DNA from: Macrostomum hystrix
Taxonomy: Eukaryota; Animalia; Platyhelminthes
Direction of reading: 5' to 3'
Assembly: GCA_950097015.1 (NCBI GenBank)
Contig: CATNEN010000002.1
Span: 8,432,001 to 8,496,000 of the forward strand
Length of the DNA: 64,000 nt
Position 1 is the first letter of the stretch, and every line of letters starts with the position of its first letter. Below the pieces are notes generated by a model. It saw nothing but the letters and a program-made list of their open reading frames with translations. It was not told where the DNA came from and made no database searches. This document shows positions 46,401 to 63,151 of the stretch, piece by piece. Position numbers and translations under genes: made by a program.

Positions 46401-49196
46401 TCGAGTCGTGCAGGCTGAGGTCCGTGATATAGAAGCCCAGCTGGCGCAGGCTGCGAATGTCCATCAGGCTGGTGATGGGCAGGGGCAGGTGGCGGCTAAC
46501 ATCAAAAGGAAATCCGGCGCGTATAACAATATTCTTATCTAATAAGATTTTTTTAAATATGTAGTCACGTGACTAAAATGAGTCATTATTTCGTCTATGC
46601 AAACGCCTGCGCCAATCAGAAGCGATTCTCCAACCACGTGACTAAAAAAACAAGCCAACTTTTCCATTGACCAAGTAACGTGACTAAAATTGCTAAGCAT
46701 TTCCACGTGACCTGAAGGCCTAGAAAGAGCAATGGTATGATTAGAGAACAAGTATTATGTGGCTCACATCGGCACACCCAGAAACACGATGCAGTCCCAT
46801 TCCAGCAGGTGCTTCATCTGGCCTTTCAAATGCAGCGACTTCATCTGGGAGCGAGTCGGCTGAGCCGGCTGATTGGTTGGGATTTCGGCGGCTGCTGACT
46901 CTGAAAAAAATCGGTTTAAAATTGGTCCACGGACTGAACAGCTGTACACAGGCGCAGCATATATCTACCACTGAAGCAGACTTTAATCTAAAATGAGACA
47001 CCTATTGCATTTGAAGCATGTTGCTCAAATTCAAAGTGCTCACGTCCGGCAGAGTCGGCCGCTGATTTGCTGTACTCGCCGTCGTCAGACGCCGAACCTC
47101 CCGAGTTCGAATCCGAATCCTTGGCCGAGTTGGTCAGCTTGATGAGGCACCGCAGCTGAAACTCATTGTTCATGTGGTGCAGAATCTGCGGGTGGAGCGG
47201 GAGACACTGCAGTCAGGGCGAGACTGGCAATTAATTAGAAAACCCACCCTACTCCAGCCCTGAACTAACCTACTCCAGCCCTGAACTAACCTACTCCAGC
47301 CCTGAACTAACCCTTCTCCAGCCCTGAACTAACCCTTCTCCAGCCCTGAACTAACCCTTCTCCAGCCCTGAACTAACCCTTCTCCAGCCCTGAACTAACC
47401 CTTCTCCAGCCCTGAACTAACCCTTCTCCAGCCCTGAACTAACCCTTCTCCAGCCCTGAACTAACCCTTCTCCAGCCCTGAACAAACCCTTCTCCAGCCT
47501 GAACTAACCCTTCTCCAGCCCTGAACTAACCCTTCTCCAGCCCTGAACTAACCCTTCTCCAGCCCTGAACTAACCCTTCTCCAGCCCTGAACTAACCCTA
47601 CTCCAGCCATGAACTAACCCTTCTACAGCCCTGAACAAACCCTACTCCAGCCCTGAACAAACCTACTCCAGCCCTGAACTAACCTACTCCAGCCCTGAAC
47701 TAACAAATCCCTAACAGGCTGCTCCTTTGTGAACCAACCCGGCCCATTCGCACGTTGTGCCAACCCGTCAGACCTGGTCCCAGGAGGCCTGAATGAAAGG
47801 CTTCTGGATCTCGAAGCAGTCGGCGAAATTCCTCTTCAACAGGTCCGGCAGGGCGCTGCGCATCGCGGCGCCGACGGTGACAACGCGGAGCTGCCGGTCC
47901 AGCACGATGTTGAAGGGGAAGATCTCCAGGAAGATGTCGCTGGAGATGCTGCTGACTCCGGCCAGGTCGCCAGCCTGCCGACCGGCTTCGGCGCGACGGC
48001 TGCGGAAGGCGCGGTTGTCGAACTCCAGGCGGTAGTTGGTGGTCCAAATGCCATCCTCGGCTTGGGCGGTGGCCTCGATGTGCACCAGCATCTCGATGCC
48101 GTAGAACAGGCGGGCGACTTCGCCGATCTGGCCGCGGACGTACTGCTCGAAGCCGCTGCGGCGGGACCGGTAGAGCAGGTTCAGGCCCGACTCGCTCTCG
48201 TTCAGGCAGTAGAAAGAGGGCGGCTGCAGGCGCGGGTAGCTGAACCTGCGGAGTCAGGATGTGAGAGAGTCAGGATGTGAGAGAGTCAGGATGTGAGAGA
48301 GTCAGGATGTGAGAGAGTCAGGATGTGAGAGAGTCAGGATGTGAGAGAGTCAGGATGTGAGAGAGTCAGGATGTGAGAGAGTCAAGGTGTGAGAGAGTCA
48401 GGATGTGAGAGAGTCAGGATGTGAGAGAGTCAGGATGTGAGAGAGTCAGGATGTGAGAGAGTCAGGATGTGAGAGAGTCAGGATGAGAGAGTCAGGATGA
48501 GAGAGTCAGGATGTGAGAGAGTCAGGGTGTGAGAGAGTCAGGATGTGAGAGAGTCAGGATGTGAGAGAGTCAGGGTGTGAGAGAGTCAGGATGTGAGAGA
48601 GTCAGAATGTGAGAGAGTCAGGATGTGAGAGAGTCAGGATGTGAGAGAGTCAGGATGTGAGAGAGTCAGGATGAGAGAGTCAGGATGAGAGAGTCAGGAT
48701 GTGAGAGAGTCAGGGTGTGAGAGAGTCAGGATGTGAGAGAGTCAGGATGTGAGAGAGTCAGGATGTGAGAGAGTCAGGATGTGAGAGAGTCAGGATGTGA
48801 GAGAGTCAGGATGTGAGAGAGTCAGGATGTGAGAGAGTCAGGATGTGAGAGTCAGGGCAGCCAGTCCTACCTGAGATACTCGTGCAGGCCGTCCAGTCCG
48901 TTGAGGAAGTCGGTGAGGTGGCGGCCCAGCACCTCCAGCACCTCGTCGTAGCCGTACTGGCCGATGAAGCTGACGAAGAACACCCCGGCGGAGTAGTACA
49001 CCTGGCTGGGCTCGAGTTTCAGCTGCTCGGCGGCGATGTCGGCCACGCGGCCCAGGAGATTCTCGTCGTACACCTGGTGGGCAGCGAAGCTCGGAGTGTT
49101 CTCAAGGCCGGCCACGCGGAGCACCCGCTGCCAGGCGGCCTCGCCGTGCTCGCGACGAATCCACTGACCGAAGGCGTCGAGGATCAGGCCGTACAT
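37496..49196 (-). CDS. Atypical soluble guanylyl cyclase (H-NOX, PAS, coiled coil, cyclase; Gyc-88E/GCY-35/GUCY1B2-like) ending in CRLL
   Basis: 12 exons: 49196-48871, 48245-47774, 47185-47044, 46900-46768, 46468-46339, 45164-45018, 43077-42931, 40031-39875, 38963-38854, 38340-38251, 38176-37957, 37659-37496, with consistent phases. Motifs [70 protein letters not shown]. Confidence 0.92.
37680..37925. repeat. 16-bp minisatellite (TTGGGTTTGAGTCGGG), sGC intron 11
   Basis: Fills most of the 297-bp intron. Confidence 0.9.
38440..38840. repeat. About 26-bp minisatellite (CTCACTCTACTTCTCTTGTCTCCCTT), sGC intron 9
   Basis: Starts about 12 nt from the donor at 38853. Confidence 0.9.
39530..39720. 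repeat. 21-bp minisatellite (CCCTCTCTACCCTCCTATCTG), sGC intron 8
   Basis: About 9 tandem copies. Confidence 0.9.
40080..40435. repeat. 14-bp minisatellite (TCTCTAACTGCCAA), sGC intron 7
   Basis: Degenerate tandem units near the exon 8 acceptor. Confidence 0.9.
41040..42905. repeat. 14-bp minisatellite (CTATCCACTGTTCT and variants), about 130 copies, sGC intron 7
   Basis: Begins about 25 nt after the exon 7 donor; source of the spurious 625-aa ORF. Confidence 0.97.
43155..44140. repeat. 19-bp minisatellite (CTACCTGTTAGACACAGCT), about 50 copies, sGC intron 6
   Basis: Tandem units with core ACCTGTTAGACAC. Confidence 0.95.
44630..44990. repeat. 19-bp minisatellite (ACCTGTTAGACACTGTTCT), sGC intron 6
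   Basis: Same core as 43155-44140; ends about 30 nt from the exon 6 donor. Confidence 0.95.
45275..45960. repeat. 22-bp minisatellite (CTAACAGGTGTCTAGTGGGAGT) plus about 44-bp triplet, sGC intron 5
   Basis: Units contain GTGTCTAACAGGT, the reverse complement of the intron 6 core. Confidence 0.95.
46564..46713. promoter_or_regulatory. Cluster of E-box/CLEAR-like motifs (CACGTGAC) with a CCAAT box in sGC intron 4
   Basis: GTCACGTGAC 46564-46573, CACGTGACT 46635-46643, AACGTGACT about 46677-46685, CACGTGACC 46704-46712; CCAAT near 46612. Confidence 0.35.
47245..47705. repeat. 22-bp minisatellite (CCCTTCTCCAGCCCTGAACTAA), sGC intron 2
   Basis: About 21 tandem copies filling most of the 588-bp intron. 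Confidence 0.95.
48250..48855. repeat. 16-bp minisatellite (GAGAGTCAGGATGTGA), about 38 copies, making up essentially all of sGC intron 1
   Basis: The array runs to within about 5 nt of the acceptor and about 15 nt of the donor. Confidence 0.97.
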
Positions 49197-50674: not shown

Positions 50675-51895
50675 GATTAGAGGATTGGGGAATATGTAGC
50701 CAGTGGATTAGAGGATTGGGGAATATGTAGACAGTGGATTAGAGAATTGGGGAATATGTAGCCAGCAGATAAGAGGAATGGGGAATATGTAGCCAGTGGA
50801 TTCGAGAATTGGGGAATATGTAGCCAGTCGATTAGAGGATTGGTGAATATGTAGCCAGCGGATTAGAGGATTAGGGAATATGTAGCCAGTGGATTAGAGG
50901 ATTGGGGAATATGTAGCCAGTGGATTAGAGGATTGGGGAATATGTAGCCAGTCGAATAGAGAATTGGGGAATATGTAGACAGTGGACTAGAGGATTGGGG
51001 AATATGTAGCCAGTCGATTAGAGGATTGGGGAATATGTAGTCAGTCGAATAGAGAATTGGGAATATGTAGACAGTGGATTAGAGAATTGAGGAATATGTA
51101 GCCAGTGGATTAGAGGATTGGGGAATATGTAGCCAGTCGAATAGAGAATTGGGGAATATGTAGACAGTCGAATAGAGAATTGGGGAATATGTAGCCAGTG
51201 GATTAGAGAATTGGGGAATATGTAGACAGTCGAATAGAGAATTGGGAATATGTAGCCAGTGGATTAGAGAATTGAGGAATATGTAGCCAGTGGATTAGAG
51301 AATTGGGGAATATGTAGCCAGTGGATTAGAGGATTGGGGAATATGTAGCCAGTGGATTAGAGAATTGGGGAATATGTAGCCAGTGGATTAGAGAATTGGG
51401 GAATATTTAGCCAGTGGATTAGAGAATTGGGGAATATTTAGCCAGTGGATTAGAGAATTGGGGAATATTTAGCCAGTGGATTAGAGGATTGGGGAATATG
51501 TAGCCAGTGGATTAGAGGATTGGGGAATATGTAGACAGTGGATTAGAGGATTGGGGAATATGTAGCCAGTCGATTAGAGGATTGGGGAATATGTAGCCAG
51601 TGGATTAGAGGATTGGGGAATATGTAGCCAGTGGATTAGAGGATTGGGGAATATGTAGCCAGTGGATTAGAGAATTGGGGAATATGTAGACAGTGGATTA
51701 GAGGATTGGGGAATATGTAGCCAGTGGATTAGAGAATTGGGGAATATGTAGACAGTGGATTAGAGGATTGGGGAATATGTAGCCAGCGGATTAGAGAATT
51801 GGGGAATATGTAGCCAGTGGATTAGAGAATTGGGGAATATTTAGCCAGTGGATTAGAGGATTGGGGAATATGTAGCCAGTGGATTAGAGGATTCG
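50675..51895. repeat. 31-bp minisatellite (GAGGATTGGGGAATATGTAGCCAGTGGATTA), about 39 copies
   Basis: Tandem units between the peroxiredoxin-like stop and the sGC promoter. Confidence 0.95.
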
Positions 51896-52028
51896 GAAAT
51901 AGCTACGGGGCTTATTGTAATGCGTGTAAAACTGTTTCATACGTTTTCTTAAGTACAACTTCCCCAATCCTCAAAGTGTGCTCAACAACTAAAGTCTGGG
52001 TCGAATTTCAGCTGCCATCCAAGCCTCG

Positions 52029-55000
52029 CTAATGCTGCCCTTCCTGATGGGAGAATTTGTCTTTGAAGTACTTCCGACTGGCCTCCGGGTCCGGGGTCAG
52101 GGTCGGGTCGCCTGACTTCCAGTCGGCCGGACAGACCTGGCCGTACTCGTCGACAAACCGGAAGGCTTTTAGCTGGCGACACAGTTCGTCAACGTTGCGC
52201 GACACCTGCGGGATGGCCGGCCGATCTCACGACGTTTAAAAATCGAATATTACGTGAAGTTTTAATTAGTCAATGCAGTGCTAAATTCTCCAGTCCCTAG
52301 TAGATTCTAAGTAGACCAAATTAATTCTACATATCTGTATTTCTCAATGGAACTATATACTTTCAATATCTACGCTGAGATACGAACACCCGACCTCTTA
52401 TTGGTGCCCTTAAAAATAATATTCCACGATTCCATAGAACAGAAAGATACGATTTCTTACATTGCTGAGCTTCATTATTTTCCTAGAATAATAAGCTTCG
52501 ATTTCCTAGAACTGCGATTTCCTAGAATATCAAGCTACGATTTCCAAGAATAAAAAGTTACGGTTTCTATGGATAATAAGTTAAGATTTCCAAAAGTAAT
52601 AAGCGACACTTTCCAAGAATAATAAGCTATGATTTCCAAGAATTTTAAACTACAATTTCCTAGAAATGAAACTACTATTTACTAGAATAATAAGTTACGA
52701 TTTCCTAGAATTTCCTAGAAATCACTGAAGTTTTGTGCCTAGAACAATTGGTACCAGCGTCAGCTGCGTTAGAAGTTTGGGTGGCGTGTCCATGTGTCCA
52801 TGGACTGAACAGATGTACACAGGGCAATGTTGTGTGTATAGCTGGCTGTAAATTTGAACTTATTTTCTTATTATTTATAATACATATTTCTTTATAATTA
52901 TTTGGACTTCCGTTACTTGTCCAGACAGGTTTTTCCACTCTGTTAAATTAATAACGCAAAAAGAAAAAATAATTAATAATTTTCTTATAAAATTTCTTTG
53001 AGCCGAATCCCTGAGAAGCATGCCGCTCATTTCCTGTCAGAGAATCAACTGTTGAATCTGCTATTTCATTAATTCTCATTGCTAGGATAAAGATTTTTCA
53101 GCTTGAAATTTTCAAAATAATTTCTTTTCCAAGAAACAATGCGTACATTTCCATCCCTTCAGCAACAGCTGACTTTCCTGAAAAATGATTGTTTAATTTC
53201 ACGCCTCACAGAAACTACAGATACACCTGGTCACCCCCGATTAAACCCTGCAATTGTGTGGAAAATATGTACCAACTGTTAATGAAGACTGATCCGGCTT
53301 TAATAAGCGATTCTAAATCCCATCTTCACTATAGAAATCCCCTTAATTTTCTCCCGGGCAAAGAGGATTTCTTTTTGAGGATGAAAAACCCATGGAAGCT
53401 GGGACGCTGAGGACGGGAAAACAAAGTAATTAAAGTAATTTTTGTCTGCAATTTTCTGTGGGCGTAAAAGGGGGAAGTCGGCTTGGCGGATGGGGCCTGT
53501 GAGGATTTGTTGTCAAGGACGCTGAGCTGGCCTACCGTTATCCATCGAGGCGTGCTTATGCTTGAAATTCTGGACAGCCGGTTTTAGTAACTCAACATGA
53601 GACCGAGACGGAGCAGACAATAGGGACATTCACAATGGCAAAACATCAATTTCAATTCTCCTCAATCTAGCTGTTTCGTGTGGAACAATTTTTAAGGTTT
53701 TAAATTAACTATTATTTGAATTGGTTGAATTAAAAAGAGAACCGCGGATGCAGCTCTGAGAACCCTACTCAAATTTAAACAGCAAATAACATTCACATGC
53801 CATTCGACCTAACAACTAATAAAACTACACTTTTCCCTCCAAACACTAGCACCCTTCATTCCCTACAACCAGAACCCTTCATTCCCTACAACCAGAACCC
53901 TTCATTCCCTACAACCAGAACCCTTCATCCCCTACAACCAGAACCCTTCATTCCCTACAACCAGAACCCTTCATTCCCTACAACCAGAACCCCTCATTCC
54001 CTACAATCAGCATCCTTCATTCCCTACAACCAGCATCCATCATTCCCTACAACCAGAACCCTTCATTCCCTACAACCAGAATCCTTCATTCCCTACAACT
54101 AGCAACCTTCATTCCCTACAACCAGTCCCCTTCATTCCCTACAACCAGAACCCTCCATTCCCTACAACCAGAATCCTTCATTCCCAACAACCAGAACCCT
54201 CCATTCCCTACAACCAGTCCCCTTCATTCCCTACAACTAGCAACCTTCATTCCCTACAACCAGTCCCCTTCATTCCCTACAACCAGAATCCTTCATTCCC
54301 TACAACTAGCAACCTTCATTCCCTACAACCAGATCCCTTCAATCCCTACAACCAGCACCCTTCCTTCCCTACAACCCGCATCCTCTGTCCCTTGAAACCC
54401 GCATCCTTTATTCTCAACAAGCATTATCCCAGCGGCCCGCAATCTTAGATCTGCACTTTCCCCGCGCACTTTCAATCCCATCAGATCAAACAAGTTCAAA
54501 CAGATGCCATAATTGGAAAGTCCAAAATAGAATTGCAAAACTAGAAGAGACGCCTCAGCAGGATGGTCGCGTGCGTGTGCTGAATGACTTTTTTAGGCAA
54601 GGTAACTATGATGCATTCATGCCGAACTGTTCGTGTTGCAAGATGGGATCTCAAAGTCAGAAACAGATACGACATTATATTCGACTAAGTTCAATGCAAA
54701 TCGCGTTCTTAAGATTTCTTGTCAGTGTTAGCTAACCCACCTGGCAGTTTCTTATCCCAATGGGTTCAATTTCATTGATCCTTTAAGCTGAATTATGACA
54801 GCCCTTAGTGATCTTAACTGATTCTGGCCGAATCCCACATATCCTCAGACTGAATCCCAACTGGCTCTGATCCTCAGACTGAATCCCAACTGGCTCTGAT
54901 CCTCAGACTGAATCCCAACTGGCTCTGATCCTCAGACTGAATCCCAACTGCACCTGATCCTCAGACTCAATCCCAACTGGCTCTGATCCTCAGACTGAAT

Positions 55001-56852
55001 CCCAACTGCTCCTGATCCTCAGACTGAATCCCAACTGGCTCTGATCCTCAGACTGAATCCCAACTGCTCCTGATCCTCAGACTGAATCCCAACTGGCTCT
55101 GATCCTCAGACTGAATCCCAACTGCACCTGATCCTCAGACTCAATCCCAACTGGCTCTGATCCTCAGACTGAATCCCAACTGCTCCTGATCCTCAGACTG
55201 AATCCCAACTGGCTCTGATCCTCAGACTGAATCCCAACTGCACCTGATCCTCAGACTGAATCCCAACTGGCTCTGATCCTCAGACTGAATCCCAACTGCA
55301 CCTGATCCTCAGACTGAATCCCAACTGGCTCTGATCCTCAGACTGAATCCCAACTGGCTCTGATCCTCAGACTGAATCCCAACTGGCTCTGATCCTCAGA
55401 CTGAATCCCAACTGCACCTGATCCTCAGACTGAATCCCAACTGGCTCTGATCCTCAGACTGAATCCCAACTGCTCCTGATCCTCAGACTGAATCCCAACT
55501 GGCTCTGATCCTCAGACTGAATCCCAACTGGCTCTGATCCTCAGACTGAATCCCAACTGGCTCTGATCCTCAGACTGAATCCCAACTGCACCTGATCCTC
55601 AGACTGAATCCCAACTGTCCCTGATCCTCAGACTGAATCCCAACTGGCTCTGATCCTCAGACTGAATCCCAACTGTCCCTGATCCTCAGACTGAATCCCA
55701 ACTGCTCCTGATCCTCAGACTGAATCCCAACTGCTCCTGATCCTCAGACTGAATCCCAACTGTCCCTGATCCTCAGACTGAATCCCAACTGGCTCTGATC
55801 CTCAGACTGAATCCCAACTGTCCCTGATCCTCAGACTGAATCCCAACTGGCTCTGATCCTCAGACTGAATCCCAACTGTCCCTGATCCTCAGACTGAATC
55901 CCAACTGCACCTGATCCTCAGACTGAATCCCAACTGCTCCTGATCCTCAGACTGAATCCCAACTGCTCCTGATCCTCAGACTGAATCCCAACTGGCTCTG
56001 ATCCTCAGACTGAATCCCAACTGGCTCTGATCCTCAGACTGAATCCCAACTGTCCCTGATCCTCAGATCGCACCAGTCCCTGATCCTCCGATCCCACCAG
56101 TCCCTGATCCTCAGATCCCACCAGTCCCTGATCCTCCGATCCCACCAGTCCCTGATCCTCAGATCCCACCAGTCCCTGATCCTTCGATCCCACCAGCACC
56201 TGATCCTCAGATCCCACCAGTCCCTGATCCTCCGATCCCACCAGTCCCTGATCCTCAGATCCCATCAGTCCCTGATCCTTCGATCCCACCAGTCCCTGAT
56301 CGTCAGATCCCACCAGTCCCTGATCACCATGGCATCGTTGATGGTGAGCTGGCGGATCACGCCTTTGCCATCCAGGATGACGTGAGCTCTGTTCAGCAGT
56401 TTGGCCTTGGCATCCCAGACGCCGGCGAAGCGACCGCTGAACCGTCCAGTGTGGTCGCAGACCACTGGAAATGGCAGGTCGCGAAGGCCGCCCCGCTCAG
56501 CCGGGATGTCCATCCATCGCTTGACCTGGTCGATGCTAGCGTCAACAACGCCGACAATGTATGCTTTGTGCTTGTCGTGCAGCTCCTTGACCATGAAGGG
56601 CGACACGGCGCGGAATTCGTCGAAAATGTTGCCGCCGGCGCCGGTGAGAATTTGCACAGCAGGTCCGTGGACAGGGACAAAGAGCAGCAGCAGGTAGCTG
56701 TGCGACATCCGGTAAGTGCACAGGCACAGCTCCTGTACACTGCCGCCAGCCAGGCTCATCGTATTGACATCATCCGGGACGACTTCGCCGACGGAAACTG
56801 GTCGGCCGACAAAGGCTGCGCCAGCGCAAGATCTGCAACTCGCCGCAGACAT
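52029..56852 (-). CDS. Prx1/AhpC-fold protein lacking the peroxidatic cysteine (pseudo-peroxiredoxin), 234 aa
   Basis: Exons 56852-56328 and 52205-52029, phase 0. RWMDIPAERGGL, ILDGKGVIRQLTIND|MVSRNVDE, GQVCPADWK and KYF align to PRDX1/2. The FYPxDFTFVCPTE motif is replaced by FVPVHGPAVQILT. Confidence 0.88.
53850..54370. repeat. 23-bp minisatellite (CCCTTCATTCCCTACAACCAGAA), Prx-like intron
   Basis: About 22 tandem copies. Confidence 0.95.
54835..56060. repeat. 29-bp minisatellite (GATCCTCAGACTGAATCCCAACTGGCTCT), about 42 copies
   Basis: Tandem units with GGCT/GCAC/GCTC/GTCC variants; contiguous with the 24-bp array. Confidence 0.97.
56060..56325. repeat. 24-bp minisatellite (GATCCTCAGATCCCACCAGTCCCT), about 11 copies, abutting the Prx-like donor
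   Basis: The first unit overlaps the donor context ATG|GTGATCAGGGACTGG. Confidence 0.95.
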
Positions 56853-57149: not shown

Positions 57150-59550
57150 TTCTAGATCCATCCCACAACTCTAATCCATTCCACAACTCTAATCCATCCC
57201 ACAACTCCAATCCATCCCACAACTCTAATCCATCCCACAACTCTAATCCATTCCACAACTCTAATCCATTCCACAACTCTAATCCATTCCACAACTCTAA
57301 TCCATCCCACAACTCTAATCCATCCCACAACTCCAATCCATCCCACAACTCTAATCCATCCCACAACTCCAATCCATCCCACAACTCTAATCCATCCCAC
57401 AACTCTAATCCATCCCACAACTCTAATCCATTCCACAACTCTAATCCATCCCACAACTCCAATCCATCCCACAACTCTAATCCATCCCACAACTCTAATC
57501 CATTCCACAACTCTAATCCATCCCACAACTCCAATCCATCCCACAACCTCTAATCCATCCCACAATTCCAATCCATCCCACCACTCCAATCCATCCCACA
57601 ACTCTACTAATTCATCCCACAACTCCAATCCACCACACAACTCTAATCCATCCCACAACTCCAATCCATCCCACAACTCCAATCCATCCCACAACTCTAA
57701 TCCATCCCACAACTCCAATCCACCACACAACTCTAATCCATTCCACAACTCCAATCCATCCCACAACTCCAATCCATCCCACAACTCTAATCCATCCCAC
57801 AACTCCAATGCATCCCACAAATCTAATCCATATCATCCCACAACTCCAATCCATCCCACAACTCTAATCCATCCCACAACTCCAATCCACCACACAACTC
57901 TAATCCATTCCACAACTCCAATCCATCCCACAACTCCAATCCATCACACAACTCTAATCCATCCCACAACTCCAATCCATCACACAACTCTAATCCATCC
58001 CACAACTCCAATCCATCACACAACTCCAATCCATCCCACAAATCTAATCCATATCATCCCACAACTCCAATCCATCCCACAACTCCAATCCATCCCACAA
58101 CTCTACTAATCCATCCCACAACTCCAATCCATCACACAACTCTAATCCATCCCACAACTCCAATCCATCCCACAACTCCAATCCATCCCACAACTCCAAT
58201 CCATCCCACAACTCTAATCCATCCCACAACTCCAATCCACCACACAACTCTAATCCATTCCACAACTCCAATCCATCCCACAACTCCAATCCATCACACA
58301 ACTCTAATCCATCCCACAACTCCAATCCATCACACAACTCTAATCCATCCCACAACTCCAATCCATCACACAACTCCAATCCATCCCACAAATCTAATCC
58401 ATATCATCCCACAACTCCAATCCATCCCACAACTCCAATCCATCCCACAACTCTACTAATCCATCCCACAACTCCAATCCATCACACAACTCTAATCCAT
58501 CCCACAACTCCAATCCATCCCACAACTCCAATCCATCCCACAACTCTACTAATCCATCTCACCACTCCAATCCATCCCACAACTCTACTAATTCATCCCA
58601 CAACTCCAATCCACCACACAACTCCAATCCATCACACAACTCTAATCCATCCCACAACTCTAATCCATCCCACAACTCCTATCCGCCCTACAACCTCCAA
58701 TCCGCCACACAACTCAAATCCATCCCACAACTCTAATCCATCCCACAACTCCAAATCATCCCACAACTCTAATCCATCCCACAACTCTAATCCATCCCAC
58801 AACTCTAATCCATCACACAACTCTAATCCATCCCACAACTCCAATCCATCACACAACTCTAATCCATCCCACAACTCTAATCCATCCCACAACTCCTATC
58901 CGCCCTACAACCTCCAATCCGCCACACAACTCAAATCCATCCCACAACTCCAATCCATCCCACAACTCTAATCCATCCCACAACTCTAATCCATCCCACA
59001 ACTCTAATCCATCCCACAACTCTAATCCATCACACAACTCTAATCCATCCCACAACTCCAATCCATCACACAACTCTAATCCATCCCACAACTCTAATCC
59101 ATCCCACAACTCCAATCCACCACACAACTCTAATCCATCCCACAACTCTAATCCATCCCACAACTCTACTAATCCATCTCACCACTCCAATCCATCCCAC
59201 AACTCTAATCCATCACACAACTCTAATCCATCCCACAACTCTAATCCATCCCACAACTCTACTAATCCATCCCACAACTCTACTAATCCATCTCACCACT
59301 CCAATCCATCCCACAACTCCAATCCATCCCACAACTCTAATCCATCCCACAACTCTAATCCATCCCACAACTCTACTAATCCATCTCACCACTCCAATCC
59401 ATCCCACAACTCTAATCCATCACACAACTCTAATCCATCCCACAACTCCAATCCATCACACAACTCTAATCCATCCCACAACTCTAATCCATTCCACAAC
59501 TCTAATCCATCCCACAACTCTAATCCATCCCACAACTCCTATCCGCCACA
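57150..59550. repeat. 18-bp minisatellite (CTCTAATCCATCCCACAA), about 130 copies with block duplications
   Basis: Intergenic; the 18-bp unit produces the many WDGLEL/VVGWIR artefact ORFs. Confidence 0.97.
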
Positions 59551-60628
59551 CAACCTATACGTACTTCGCTCAGCAACCATTAATTGGTTATCCTTAGTAG
59601 GTGCACAAAAGTAGAATAATTGTATAGTACAGTATCAGAGCCACAGGTGCGAGAATTTCTTTCATAGTGATGATTGGCTACTTCAGTAGAGTGAGAGCAC
59701 ATAATTAACTCTTTGACAATGACATCGTCAGTCTAAATCAGACTTGGAGAATTACAAATCATCATCTAGGTGTTATAAAACTGTCGCTCAACATTACACT
59801 GCACGTTAAGTCGTCGACTAATTTAAATTTAGAGACCATTAGGATAATGAGCAAGGACATCGTGAGAAAATCAAGAGTAGAGACTGACACAAGCCCGTGG
59901 AGTGACTCACTGATATATGCTTTCCGGAGAGTCAGATCACAGCTTTGTGATTTCCTAATTGGCCACACTAGGATAGCAAGCTGAGGTTCCGTTAGAAAAG
60001 CAGCGAGTGACAGCCAGCACCATTGCTGGATAAACTGCAGATTTGGCTGACTGACAGCTCCTAAAGCCAACACTTTGTCACTCCACAGACTCATTAGTAA
60101 TGTTTCTTTAACCTTTTCCATTTAGTTATTTATTTCCAACAAAATACCTGACTACTATTAGTAGAACGCACAATAAGATATTAGCCTTCCTGAGGATGCA
60201 CGCCGCTGTCAGCTTGTAACTGTAAGGAGAGGACGCAGGGCTTAGCAGCTTGTGAGCAGAATTATTGAGGTCAAATGCACGTGCACATCTACATAGACAT
60301 TGTCCATGGACGGCTTTGGCTTTTAAGCCGCGAACGCTGTCAGAGCGATATTAAGATGAGATTTTTTGAGAATCAGAGACAAGGATCAGTGGGATTTAGG
60401 TAAGTCCTGAGAGAAGTGAAACGAGCTTCTTCTTACCATCTTCCTAGAGACCACAAAACACTAGGGAACAGCAGCAACAAATGAAACGATAAACTTTTCC
60501 GAGCACAGAAAAAACTCGAAAGCAAAGCAACTTAAACAGCTTTCGAATAACAGCTTTATTTCCAATAAATTTCTCATTGCTACATTCCGTCTTTTTTCAG
60601 CGCAACGAACACTGCCAATGAAAAGCTG

Positions 60629-63151
60629 TCACTCCAGTGCCTCAACTCGCTTCTGCGCCACGCGGTCCTGGCGCCGCTTCCTGGCCTCCTTGGCGCGGGT
60701 TCGCCTGGCCTCGGCCTGGTCCATGAGCTGCTTGGTGCGGGCCCGCTCAGCCTTCTTCCTGTGAATGTGCTCAACAAGGATGCGCTTGTTCTTGAAGCCG
60801 TTGCCCTTGCAGCTGACGTACAGCTGGTGGTAAAGGTGCTTGTCGATCTTCTTGGCCTCGCGGTAGCGCTTGAGCAGGCGGCGCAGGACTCGCATCCGGC
60901 GCATCCACAGCACTTTCTCAGGCATGCGGGCATTGGCCGTACCCTTGCGCTTACCCTGGCCCATGTGCCGGCCCTTGCGCCTGGCGATCAGGTTCTTGCG
61001 GCAGCGGGCGCGCGAATGGACAGCCACCGGTTTGCGAATGATCAGGCCGTCCTTAACCAGCTTGCGAATGTTCTGCCGGCTGTTGGCATTGGCAATCTCA
61101 CTGTTCTCATTGGGATCTAGCCAGATCTTGGCCTTTCCGCATTTCAGAACTGTGGCTGCTAGCCGCTTCTGTAGGCGCAGGTTGCTGTGCAGACAGGTTT
61201 GGGGTGAAATGATATCATTATTAACAAGCAGCAGTTGATTTTAAGTTTTTGAGTTCAAATCTCTGACCCTTCTCTGTCAGCATTCCCGACTAGCTTAAAT
61301 AAAACAGCTTGGTTAATTTTTAATAGCAGTGAGAGTACAAAAATGAATATTGCTGCCTTGTATTTCTAGGTTTGTATATCAGAAAGAGGTCAAGAGTTCG
61401 AATCTTAGCCAAAGAGAAACTTATTTGTCTCAGAGCAAGTCATTTTACTCATTTTTCTTTAGTTCACCCAGCTGTAAGATGGATAACAACACTAAATAAA
61501 TAGCTATATAAATAGAGAGGAGAAAAAATTCTTTTATTTCCAATACAGTACAAACAAAAGACTAAATTTATTCCCCAACTGTTTGAGAAGAGAAGATAAG
61601 TGAGACAGGGAGAGATAATTGAAGAAAGTACGAAGTATATAACAAGAACTATAACCTAGAACAACTTTTATGGCCAAATTTCAGATTTTACAATGTACAG
61701 ATATGAGATGGCATAGGGTTAGGAATGTTAGCTGCCAAGCTAAAAAATATAGGGATTTTGCCAAATTCAGGGGATCTGAGCTGATGGGCTATTTGAATTA
61801 CACCTATAGGAGTCCTTGTGGTGGCAACAGTTCCAACAGAACACATTAACTGCTCTGAATGTGTGAAGTACATGAAGATGACTACAACAAACTAACTTGG
61901 CATATACTTTACATTCTGTCATTTCAATGTTACTTTCTTATATTGTCCTAAACTCCAGAGTTAAGATGCAAGTTATTCTCATTGAAAATAATTTGACAAA
62001 TTATTCTGTAGAAAAGCTGGTTTGGCTTAAGCAAAAGGCTCAAAAAAGTGTCCAAGAGCAACTTCAAGTATTGTGAAATGATCTTGTCTGCACTACAGCC
62101 AATTAGTTACAGCAATAAGTACTTTTTTGGACACTGAAATTGAACTTATTGGCAAATAATTAATGCCTATAATATGTAATTGGCATTACTATAATTATAA
62201 TAGGCAGAGCTTATTCCCACGGTCCCGTGCCGATAATTTTCTGCTTATCCACACGGCAGCTTGTATGAATAGGTCTAAAACTCTTTATATAAATATGCTG
62301 TGTCATTAATTTCCATTTTATTCACACAGTTCTGTTCTTCGAAATGAGGCCCTTTCGGGTTTGAATGTTTTGTTGAACCCTCGAGCCAATAGATAGACTA
62401 AGTTGAAAGTTGCCAGTGTGTTACGACAGTTTTCTACATTTCGACCTACACATTTATTAACCGACATTAATGTCATCCTTTTTTATCGCAATAACAACTT
62501 AATAAATCTTTTGTCATTGTTACGTGTTTTCATTCGAATTGTATTGACTTAAAAAGTAAGAAGTCTATCAAAGAAAATCATACGAGTCAACCAGCAGAAT
62601 TCTAGTCAGCACCAAGCTCGTCACACATATTATATATCATTGTTATTATTTTACACTATGCATTGATAGTGTACAAAAGAGAAGAATAGGTAGGGACTTG
62701 AAAGTAGACCTATTCATACAAGCTGCCATGTGGATAAGCATAAAATTATTGGCACGGATCTGTGTGGATAAAATTGAAATTATCAGCACAGGACCGTGGG
62801 AATAAGCACTTCCTTACTAATAATACTAGCATAGCTGTGTTCAGCATACTGTATACCTTATCTTTGTACTTTCTTATCTTTGAACATTTTGTCCCTGTGC
62901 ATTGATCATGTTTATCTTATTTTTTTGTCATTTATTAGTGTAACTTTCATTCTTTTGTTCTCCATTTCATCCAAACCAAAATTTCGTCAAAAGATATAAA
63001 AAGTTAAGAAGGTAAATTTTTCTGTAAATTGCTCGGTGCCTTATTAACGGATAGGTTTATAAATTTACTGTAAATCTAAACGACCTCTTAATGTTAATCC
63101 AAAATGTTTCAAAGGGGGCATACAATGCATTAAATTTAAAGCTTACCTCAT
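60629..63151 (-). CDS. RPL19: 60S ribosomal protein L19 (eL19), 186 aa
   Basis: Exon 1 ATGAG|GTAAGC at 63151-63147; exon 2 61184-60629. Translates as [28 protein letters not shown]...[22 protein letters not shown]...[15 protein letters not shown] on the minus strand near 60556. Confidence 0.97.
62202..62814. mobile_element. MITE-like element with about 80-bp imperfect terminal inverted repeats in the RPL19 intron
   Basis: 62202-62277 (AGGCAGAGCTTATTCCCACGGTCCCGTGCCGATAATTT...GCAGCTTGTATGAATAGGTCTA) is the reverse complement of 62705-62814, apart from an about 35-bp internal insertion. TSD unclear. Confidence 0.75.

Follow-up and report, generated by a model that had tools for sequence, protein, structure and literature searches.

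Peroxiredoxins (Prx) are defined by a peroxidatic cysteine (Cp), and databases and surveys usually detect them through that signature. Dead paralogs have been described for numerous other families of enzymes. In the literature searched, we found no characterized natural Cp-less Prx and no characterized Prx pseudoenzyme, only engineered mutants. Among these, Anabaena Alr4641 C56S kept its oligomers and chaperone activity without Cp (PMC4349727), as did the Cp mutant of T. cruzi MPX (PMC8855072). Here, we analyzed a window of 64,000 nucleotides of Macrostomum hystrix DNA containing a Prx-like gene whose product, like these two mutants, combines a Prx fold with the absence of Cp. However, the engineered proteins carry point changes and keep an intact active-site helix, whereas in Macrostomum the whole segment has been rebuilt, naturally and under selection.

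Gene structure and the Macrostomum lignano ortholog

The Prx-like gene consists of two exons (Table 1), and the interval given in the original prediction coincided exactly with the CDS from ATG to TAG. In-frame TAG and TGA stops are located upstream of the ATG. Exon 1 encodes the N-terminal beta-hairpin, strand beta3, the remodeled Cp loop and helix, and beta4 to beta7, and exon 2 contributes helix alpha5 plus a C-terminal arm that carries the resolving cysteine (Cr, in VCP) and the YF motif. The splice junction (INDAM/VSRNVDE) yields the same length as the canonical INDLP/VGRSVDE and agrees with the transcript-derived M. lignano protein (INDAM/VSRSVGE). Four minisatellite arrays make up more than half of the intron; in contrast, the M. 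lignano intron is 2.1 kb long and contains no minisatellites.

Table 1. Features of the Prx-like gene and their positions in the window
Feature	Position	Strand	Detail
Prx-like gene, CDS	52029-56852, 2 exons	minus	233 aa; relative of typical 2-Cys peroxiredoxins
Exon 1	56328-56852	minus	ATG at 56852; 175 codons
CRSC and CLC	56837-56826 and 56726-56718 (span 56718-56837)	minus	Cysteines specific to the window species
PVHGPAVQ, aa 60-67	56652-56675	minus	In place of PxxxTxxC; Thr to Pro64, Cys to Gln67 (CAA)
Remodeled segment, aa 60-96	56565-56675	minus	Pro60 to just before beta4; 37 residues, no Cys
GGL of GGLG	56484-56492	minus	GGLR in the window, GGLQ in M. lignano
VVCD, Cys132	56454-56465	minus	Directly before the invariant Asp, end of beta5
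LNRAH	56382-56396	minus	Active-site Arg155; Arg in 60/60 canonical comparators
Intron	52206-56327	minus	Phase 0, 4122 nt, GTGATC...CCCGCAG (GT..AG)
Intron minisatellite arrays	52479-52711, 53851-54376, 54841-56067, 56043-56325
Exon 2	52029-52205	minus	58 codons and TAG stop (52031-52029)
VCP, resolving Cys (aa 200)	52128-52136	minus	Flanks also conserved in both species
KYF, YF motif of the C-terminal helix	52065-52073	minus

The M. lignano ortholog shares 66-70% identity with the window protein, has an intron at the same position and also lacks Cp. It is present as three nearly identical copies with intact ORFs (Mlig020987.g1-g3, corresponding to PAA68523.1, PAA55184.1 and PAA85546.1; UniProt A0A1I8I8E1), and the introns of all three copies (L001-L003) are placed identically; the copies differ at 1-3 sites per exon, too few for selection inference. 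The order RPL19e, Prx-like gene and soluble guanylate cyclase (sGC), all on one strand, is kept in both species. Besides these neighbors, the M. hystrix gene and Mlig020987 share the loss of Cp and the activating Thr, as well as Cys132, the Arg, Cr and YF. The GenBank gene models of M. lignano were derived from an RNA-seq-guided transcriptome annotation (PMC5730564); therefore, judging from this annotation, the ortholog produces transcripts from which this intron is spliced out. We found no mention of Mlig020987 in the literature searched or in the supplements of Macrostomum papers. GenBank names the ortholog "hypothetical protein", and UniRef assigns it the automatic name "thioredoxin-dependent peroxiredoxin".

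One M. lignano entry fuses the Prx-like protein to sGC (UniProt A0A1I8GK59, P0004, 940 aa), which we read as a gene-model artifact. The cyclase starts from a Met of its own (MYGLILD) and has a CCAAT box that the two species share, and the GT donor used in the fused model has no counterpart in the window immediately ahead of the stop codon.

The former active site and the retained Prx motifs

At the start of helix alpha2, where Cp is expected within PxxxT/SxxC, the M. hystrix protein reads PVHGPAVQ, as the original prediction had proposed, and its ortholog reads PTHGPAVD. The prediction erred in giving the Gln codon as CAG. It correctly excluded TGA, no TGA being in frame within the CDS, and selenocysteine at the Cp position is thereby ruled out. 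The insertion of approximately 10 residues that it described is also real: against the canonical-Prx profile, 32 residues of the window protein (aa 62-93) face only 21 positions, which amounts to 11 additional residues. In neither species did the stretch from Pro60 to strand beta4 contain a cysteine, whichever alignment was used. In the AlphaFold2 (AF2) models, helix alpha2 is replaced by three short helices, and the PVHGPAVQ stretch forms a 4-residue loop and the first helix turn directly after beta3. The residue homologous to Cp is ambiguous: Pro spacing and the AlphaFold topology point to Gln67, at a pLDDT of only 68-77 in this segment, MAFFT points to Ser84 (AVSP), and the HMMER canonical-Prx profile aligns neither residue to Cp. 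Cp was lost before the two species split; the residue at Pro+7 is Gln in M. hystrix and Asp in M. lignano, and the MAFFT position is Ser in both. From a Cp loop and helix rebuilt with approximately 11 extra residues and without any Cys, we infer that the canonical peroxidase cycle would be impossible for this protein and that it has no peroxidase activity.

The other Prx signatures named in the original prediction, namely, the conserved Arg, the VCP resolving motif, GGL and YF, were all located (Table 1). GGLG and YF mark Prx of the sensitive eukaryotic type; YF persists, and GGLG is reduced to GGLR in the window and to GGLQ in M. lignano. Both Macrostomum species keep 32 of the 61 canonical conserved columns, and these are unevenly placed: 16 of 19 survive in the region that runs from the catalytic Arg through the Cr arm, compared with 2 of 12 in the Cp loop-helix. 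Conserved columns of the decamer (A-type) interface are altered (SVDS to VDAS), and oligomeric behavior may therefore differ from that of canonical Prx. His157 of LNRAH is a derived residue found in both species; the 60 canonical comparators carry L, T, S, I or M at this position and never His. Cys132 is encoded by TGC in both species, whereas the comparators have Ser (37/60) or Ala (23/60) and never Cys. This conserved cysteine was missing from the earlier list of cysteines, which named CRSC and CLC instead. Those two motifs are present in the window but are not conserved in M. lignano, where the N-terminal tail that corresponds to CRSC is unconserved (RKPAS) and SLR stands opposite CLC; ELC is likewise not conserved, and the ortholog has an additional Cys in RFSCHF. 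Because they are species-specific, the CRSC and CLC cysteines are unlikely to be the key to function.

The window exons were searched separately, and for the full-length search and model, the complete M. lignano protein (P0002) was used as a proxy. Exon 1 matched Pfam AhpC-TSA (PF00578) over aa 92-168 only, at 28 bits (cut-off 26), and exon 2 matched 1-cysPrx_C (PF10417) with an E-value of 1.5e-11 and 44.5 bits (cut-off 21.1), as well as tryparedoxin peroxidase 4llr in the PDB (E 3.6e-15). AF2 reached a pLDDT of 85 for the full-length M. lignano protein and 83.4 for window exon 1 only, with a pTM of 0.82. The best Foldseek match of the AF2 model was reduced human PRDX2 (7kiz; TM 0.89 by target length, rmsd 2.4), and the top matches were all typical 2-Cys Prx with TM 0.8-0.9 by target length. 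The thioredoxin-like Prx fold with its C-terminal extension is thus retained in the predicted structure. The fold and both Pfam domains are common to the typical 2-Cys Prx (PRDX2 7kiz/1qmv, PRDX1, PRDX4 and 4llr), whose invariant Pro, Arg, Trp, GG and Asp are kept, together with beta7 (RQLTIND), alpha5, VCP, Trp and YF. Unlike these proteins, the Macrostomum protein has neither Cp nor the activating Thr, carries the extra residues and the altered SVDS and GGLG motifs, and shows an identity to them of approximately 30-35% and a long stem branch.

Purifying selection and possible functions

Comparison of M. hystrix with M. lignano (NG86; two species only, counts computed per exon and then pooled) gave a dN of 0.224, a dS of 0.973 and an omega of 0.23 (bootstrap CI 0.15-0.33), and the LWL85 and ML estimates of omega were also below 0.4. 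Because dS is near saturation, omega is imprecise, but the excess of synonymous change (pN 0.19 versus pS 0.55; Fisher p 2e-17) is robust. The neighboring genes have a dS of 0.65-0.72, and therefore the comparison of the Prx-like genes is orthologous. Constraint was weaker than in sGC (dN/dS 0.09-0.12), and omega was 0.33 in the C-terminal exon versus 0.21 in exon 1. Over alignment codons 50-90, a range spanning most of the remodeled segment, dN was 0.22, dS 1.31 and omega approximately 0.17; the rebuilt active-site stretch is itself constrained. These values contradict neutral evolution, and the Prx-like gene is maintained by purifying selection and is not a decaying copy. The earlier description of a maintained pseudoenzyme is thus borne out with respect to maintenance by the open frames, the intron, the synteny and omega, while its other half comes from sequence only, which suggests a catalytically dead protein. 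Selection across two distant species implies that this protein probably has a non-peroxidase job.

A decaying duplicate, nonfunctional or barely expressed and with a frame left open by chance, would fit the very divergent N-terminal half, with its Pfam score close to the cut-off, and a nonsynonymous evolution three to four times faster than that of the adjacent sGC. However, the open frames and the GT..AG boundaries are intact in both species at a dS of about 0.7-1.0 and in all three M. lignano copies, pN is far below pS, and the M. lignano models are transcript-derived. Decay is therefore very unlikely, the least probable of the explanations that we considered.

In the Prx family, the head-to-tail dimer is built by beta7 and the C-terminal arm, which extend across the active site of the partner. 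We speculate, tentatively, that this selected, Macrostomum-restricted Cp-less Prx is most likely a mixed-dimer partner of a Cp-bearing Prx. Selection has kept the thioredoxin-like core, the catalytic Arg, beta6 and beta7, alpha5, and the C-terminal arm with Cr and YF. In this proposal, the protein would still dimerize via the head-to-tail interface and form mixed dimers with the Cp-bearing enzyme. Its Cr would then service the Cp of the partner, giving one live site per dimer, and the oxidation, hyperoxidation or relay behavior of the partner might be tuned or rerouted as an outcome. Several observations were counted against this proposal. The higher omega of the C-terminal exon is unexpected if the arm matters most, the retention of Cr may be purely structural, and some thiol chemistry may still be possible through the derived, conserved Cys132.

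The retained fold and the purifying selection would also suit a cysteine-independent chaperone (holdase) or scaffold that binds unfolded or client proteins through its fold and in which Cr is a structural leftover. The engineered Cp-less 2-Cys Prx, which keep their oligomers and chaperone activity (PMC4349727, PMC8855072), argue for such a role. Nevertheless, Prx usually act as holdases in the form of decamers or larger assemblies, while conserved columns of the decamer interface are altered here, and neither the strict conservation of VCP and its flanks nor the constraint on the rebuilt Cp segment would be explained; we regard this role as possible but somewhat unlikely. Cys132 raises the alternative of a thiol enzyme with a relocated reactive cysteine, in which Cys132, together with Arg155 and Cr, would reduce peroxide or catalyze some other thiol-disulfide reaction. 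The occurrence of Cys132 in both species and in none of the 60 canonical comparators, the retention of the invariant Arg and Cr, and the conserved HGPAV and His157 in the rebuilt pocket, which suggest a constrained site, are consistent with this idea. On the other hand, Ser/Ala to Cys is a conservative change at a small-residue position, and the activating Thr and the Arg-positioning Glu are gone. Moreover, beta5 is two strands removed from beta3 in proteins with a thioredoxin fold, and thus Cys132 is probably outside the old pocket. Relocated catalysis is unlikely in our judgment. Still less probable is that the protein forms half of an obligate pair with a hypothetical Cp-keeping, Cr-less paralog, the heterodimer having one complete Cp...Cr site; to our knowledge, no Prx with such complementary half-sites has been described.

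Relatives outside Macrostomum and wider relevance

Natural Cp-less members are overlooked or automatically named as active enzymes, as the UniRef name of the M. lignano ortholog illustrates. With a rebuilt, constrained former active site next to an intact Cr arm, the Macrostomum gene provides a natural experiment on what the Prx scaffold may do besides peroxidase catalysis, for example as a dimer partner, a relay or a chaperone. Its function is directly testable in M. lignano, for which RNAi and transgenesis exist. The scope is modest, as the gene is, on the available data, confined to a single genus.

An exhaustive search of 1.84 billion representatives yielded no nearer relative in any other genus: a score below 1e-30 was reached by the M. 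lignano cluster alone, and the next match was at 1.2e-22. In the tree, the stem branch measured 1.44 substitutions per site, compared with 0.47 between the two Macrostomum species. As far as these data go, the Prx-like gene appears to have branched off from the typical 2-Cys (AhpC/Prx1-type) Prx and to be restricted to Macrostomum.

Other natural Prx1-type proteins in which the Cp column holds a residue other than Cys were observed in Tritrichomonas musculus (KAK8838833.1, P0090) and among environmental eukaryote proteins (P0031 and P0032). These proteins are full-length and Prx1-like and keep VCP, but they lack the 11-aa remodeling. With E-values of 1e-16 or worse, they are no nearer to the Macrostomum pair than ordinary Prx, and KAK8838833.1 is not among the nearest neighbors of the pair in the tree. 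The three proteins probably represent independent losses of Cp.

Gene structure and absence of the peroxidatic cysteine

The original prediction placed a peroxiredoxin (Prx) with an intact frame and no peroxidatic cysteine (Cp) at 52029-56852, and this span proved to be exactly the coding sequence, since the ATG, the stop codon and the splice junction were all placed there. In-frame TAG and TGA stops lie upstream of the ATG, and the phase-0 intron measures 4122 nt. The exons join at INDAM|VSRNVDE, equal in length to the canonical INDLP|VGRSVDE, and the same junction is present in a transcript-derived protein of Macrostomum lignano. The window itself is eukaryotic in character, with compact GC-rich exons among many minisatellites. 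Its two Prx-like exons were searched separately; where an analysis called for a complete protein, P0002, the full-length natural orthologue from M. lignano, stood in.

Features of the Prx-like locus and its surroundings (window coordinates)
Feature	Position	Strand	Description
RPL19e	60621-62805	minus	lies upstream of the Prx-like gene and is oriented as at all three M. lignano loci
18-nt array	57156-58500+		onset ~300 nt upstream of the ATG
Prx-like exon 1	56852-56328	minus	by translation: ATG at 56852, 175 codons to ...RQLTINDAM, then GTGATC
Intron array	56043-56325		period 24 nt
Intron array	54841-56067		period 29 nt
Intron array	53851-54376		period 23 nt
Intron array	52479-52711		period 23 nt
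Prx-like exon 2	52205-52029	minus	by translation: from 52205 (VSRNVDELCRQL...) after ...CCCGCAG, to TAG 52031-52029
31-nt array	51000-51901		onset ~130 nt past the stop codon
sGC start	49194-49196		cyclase's own start, MYGLILD
Repeat-like segment	29026-29209		resembles part of the M. lignano intron

Exon 1 matched Pfam AhpC-TSA marginally (28 bits, cut-off 26; aa 92-168 only) and exon 2 matched 1-cysPrx_C well, and PDB sequence searches returned typical 2-Cys peroxiredoxins only (PRDX2, PRDX1, PRDX4 and tryparedoxin peroxidases). All motifs reported earlier were found, namely PVHGPAVQ (aa 60-67), GGL, LNRAH with the invariant Arg, the VCP of the resolving cysteine (Cr), KYF, CRSC and CLC. An in-frame TGA was indeed absent from the coding sequence; the Gln codon, previously given as CAG, is CAA. 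The extra cysteines of CRSC and CLC are present in the window protein and not common to M. lignano, where the ELC cysteine likewise lacks a counterpart.

By spacing from the invariant Pro, the Cp equivalent (Pro+7) is Gln67. MAFFT repeatedly set Ser84 of AVSP in the Cp column (F-x-x-V-S-P against F-T-F-V-C-P), an alignment that needs 17 inserted residues ahead of the serine and 7 deleted residues behind it. When canonical Prx were represented by a profile HMM of 59 sequences, neither residue was aligned: the match broke off at FVPV and resumed at aa 94, leaving 32 residues to face 21 profile positions. The net gain, 11 residues, agrees with the insertion of about 10 aa noted originally. AlphaFold modelling gave concordant predictions for the M. 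lignano protein (pLDDT 85, pTM 0.82) and for window exon 1 (pLDDT 83). In window numbering, beta3 (aa 53-59) is followed by a loop of four residues, a short helix at aa 64-71 with Gln67 in its first turn, a further loop, helices at aa 78-82 and 85-95, and then beta4 (aa 97-103). On this topology Gln67 is the likelier counterpart of Cp in space, although the segment was modelled with a pLDDT of only 68-77. No cysteine was found between Pro60 and beta4 in the window protein or in M. lignano; thus, at the level of sequence, Cp is absent whether Gln67 or Ser84 is chosen.

Orthology and selection

A word-index search with exon 1 returned one cluster only, M. lignano Mlig020987.g1-g3, at 70% identity. 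The three genomic copies (L001-L003) are near-identical to one another, carry the phase-0 intron after INDAM as in the window, and read PTHGPAVD at the motif. RPL19e, the Prx-like gene and soluble guanylate cyclase (sGC) follow one another with equal order and strand in both species, and one RPL19e exon shows 99% protein identity. The M. lignano GenBank annotation was derived from an RNA-seq-guided transcriptome assembly (PMC5730564), an indirect sign of transcription and splicing of the orthologue.

In the two-species comparison, the sGC exons gave dN 0.06-0.075, dS 0.65-0.72 and omega 0.09-0.12, and the RPL19e exon gave 0.005, 0.65 and 0.008, respectively. The dS of these neighbours shows species-level divergence, and the Prx-like comparison is therefore orthologous. 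For the Prx-like gene, NG86 on pooled per-exon counts yielded dN 0.224, dS 0.973 and omega 0.23 (bootstrap CI 0.15-0.33), with pN 0.19 against pS 0.55 (Fisher p 2e-17); all other estimators placed omega below 0.4, and alignment codons 50-90, which hold most of the rebuilt segment, gave ~0.17. The gene evolves faster than its neighbours yet is clearly constrained.

The canonical comparators share 61 conserved columns. Both species retain 32 of these and both depart from 21, and the other 8 are altered in one species only. Pro, Trp, GG, Asp and the catalytic Arg are retained, together with YF, the Cr arm (G-E/Q-V-C-P-A-x-W...G) and the greater part of beta6, beta7 (RQLTIND) and alpha5. Nearly the entire Cp loop-helix is lost (2/12 columns kept), as are the SVDS motif and the last Gly of GGLG. 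Two derived residues are conserved in both species: Cys132, ahead of the invariant Asp, where all 60 canonical sequences have Ser or Ala and never Cys, and His157, two residues past the Arg, where no canonical sequence has His.

Isolation, classification and possible roles

Below 1e-30, exhaustive phmmer searching of 1.84 billion representatives with P0002 recovered its own cluster and nothing else; the matches that followed, at 1e-22, were ordinary Prx or fragments, the full-length ones being ~24-36% identical. In a FastTree phylogeny of 62 sequences, the stem of the Macrostomum pair measured 1.44 substitutions per site and the two species lay 0.47 apart, which fits a long or fast episode of change ahead of the Macrostomum split and constraint thereafter. 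The matches also held Prx1-type proteins unrelated to this pair, KAK8838833.1 of Tritrichomonas musculus (recorded as 'peroxiredoxin') and two environmental eukaryote proteins (P0031, P0032), one of which reads DFTYVSPTE, Ser standing where Cp would be. Like the Macrostomum pair, all three are full-length, keep VCP and have a non-Cys residue in the Cp column. They look like separate cases and suggest that Cp has been lost repeatedly in nature among Prx1-type proteins.

Fold and descent place the protein in the AhpC/Prx1 lineage, yet it lacks the Cp that defines a peroxiredoxin enzyme, and it is therefore best described as a pseudo-peroxiredoxin. The maintenance proposed originally was borne out by selection and synteny, and the Cp-less protein is predicted to keep the Prx fold; its catalytic loss is deduced from the missing Cp, without which the canonical peroxidase cycle would be impossible under established Prx chemistry. 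Dead paralogues are a common feature of enzyme families. In a literature search of limited scope, we found no account of a typical 2-Cys Prx that lacks Cp naturally and is maintained by selection, nor any description of this gene or its M. lignano orthologue. The gene is lineage-restricted and provides a clean, well-supported case in a genetically tractable flatworm genus.

In typical 2-Cys Prx, beta7 forms the head-to-tail dimer interface and the C-terminal arm brings Cr to the partner's Cp. Because beta6, beta7, alpha5 and the Cr arm are selectively retained, the most economical reading, which we put forward tentatively, is that the protein would act as a dimer partner; paired with a Prx that bears Cp, it would leave one live site in the mixed dimer. 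The main rival, a cysteine-independent holdase or scaffold, would draw on the chaperone activity that survives in Cp-less Prx mutants (PMC4349727, PMC8855072). Against it, columns of the decamer interface are altered, and it would leave unexplained why Cr is conserved; we consider it rather unlikely. There is only a slim chance that a reactive cysteine was relocated to Cys132. A decaying duplicate is very unlikely; the dN/dS comparison, proposed beforehand as a check, indicated constraint and not neutral evolution.

Intron repeats and a fused gene model

Four minisatellite arrays occupy more than half of the Prx-like intron, the last starting 2 bases past the splice donor, and two further arrays lie near the gene. 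No tandem array was found in the orthologous M. lignano intron.

In UniProt A0A1I8GK59, a 'guanylate cyclase' model of 940 aa from M. lignano, the Prx-like protein is joined, at L001 12805-13476, to the sGC downstream of it. The join is a GT..AG 'intron' that starts at the last Lys codon and ends 38 nt short of the ATG of the cyclase. This fusion is probably a gene-model artefact, as both species conserve a CCAAT box for the cyclase, which also has its own Met start. In both, the two genes remain neighbours, separated by 659 nt in M. lignano and by 2832 nt in the window.

A ~180-nt segment of the M. lignano intron (L001 12012-12195) and a window segment 23 kb away have similar translations on both strands (E values as low as 5e-18), and may represent a repeat common to the two or a piece of a mobile element.
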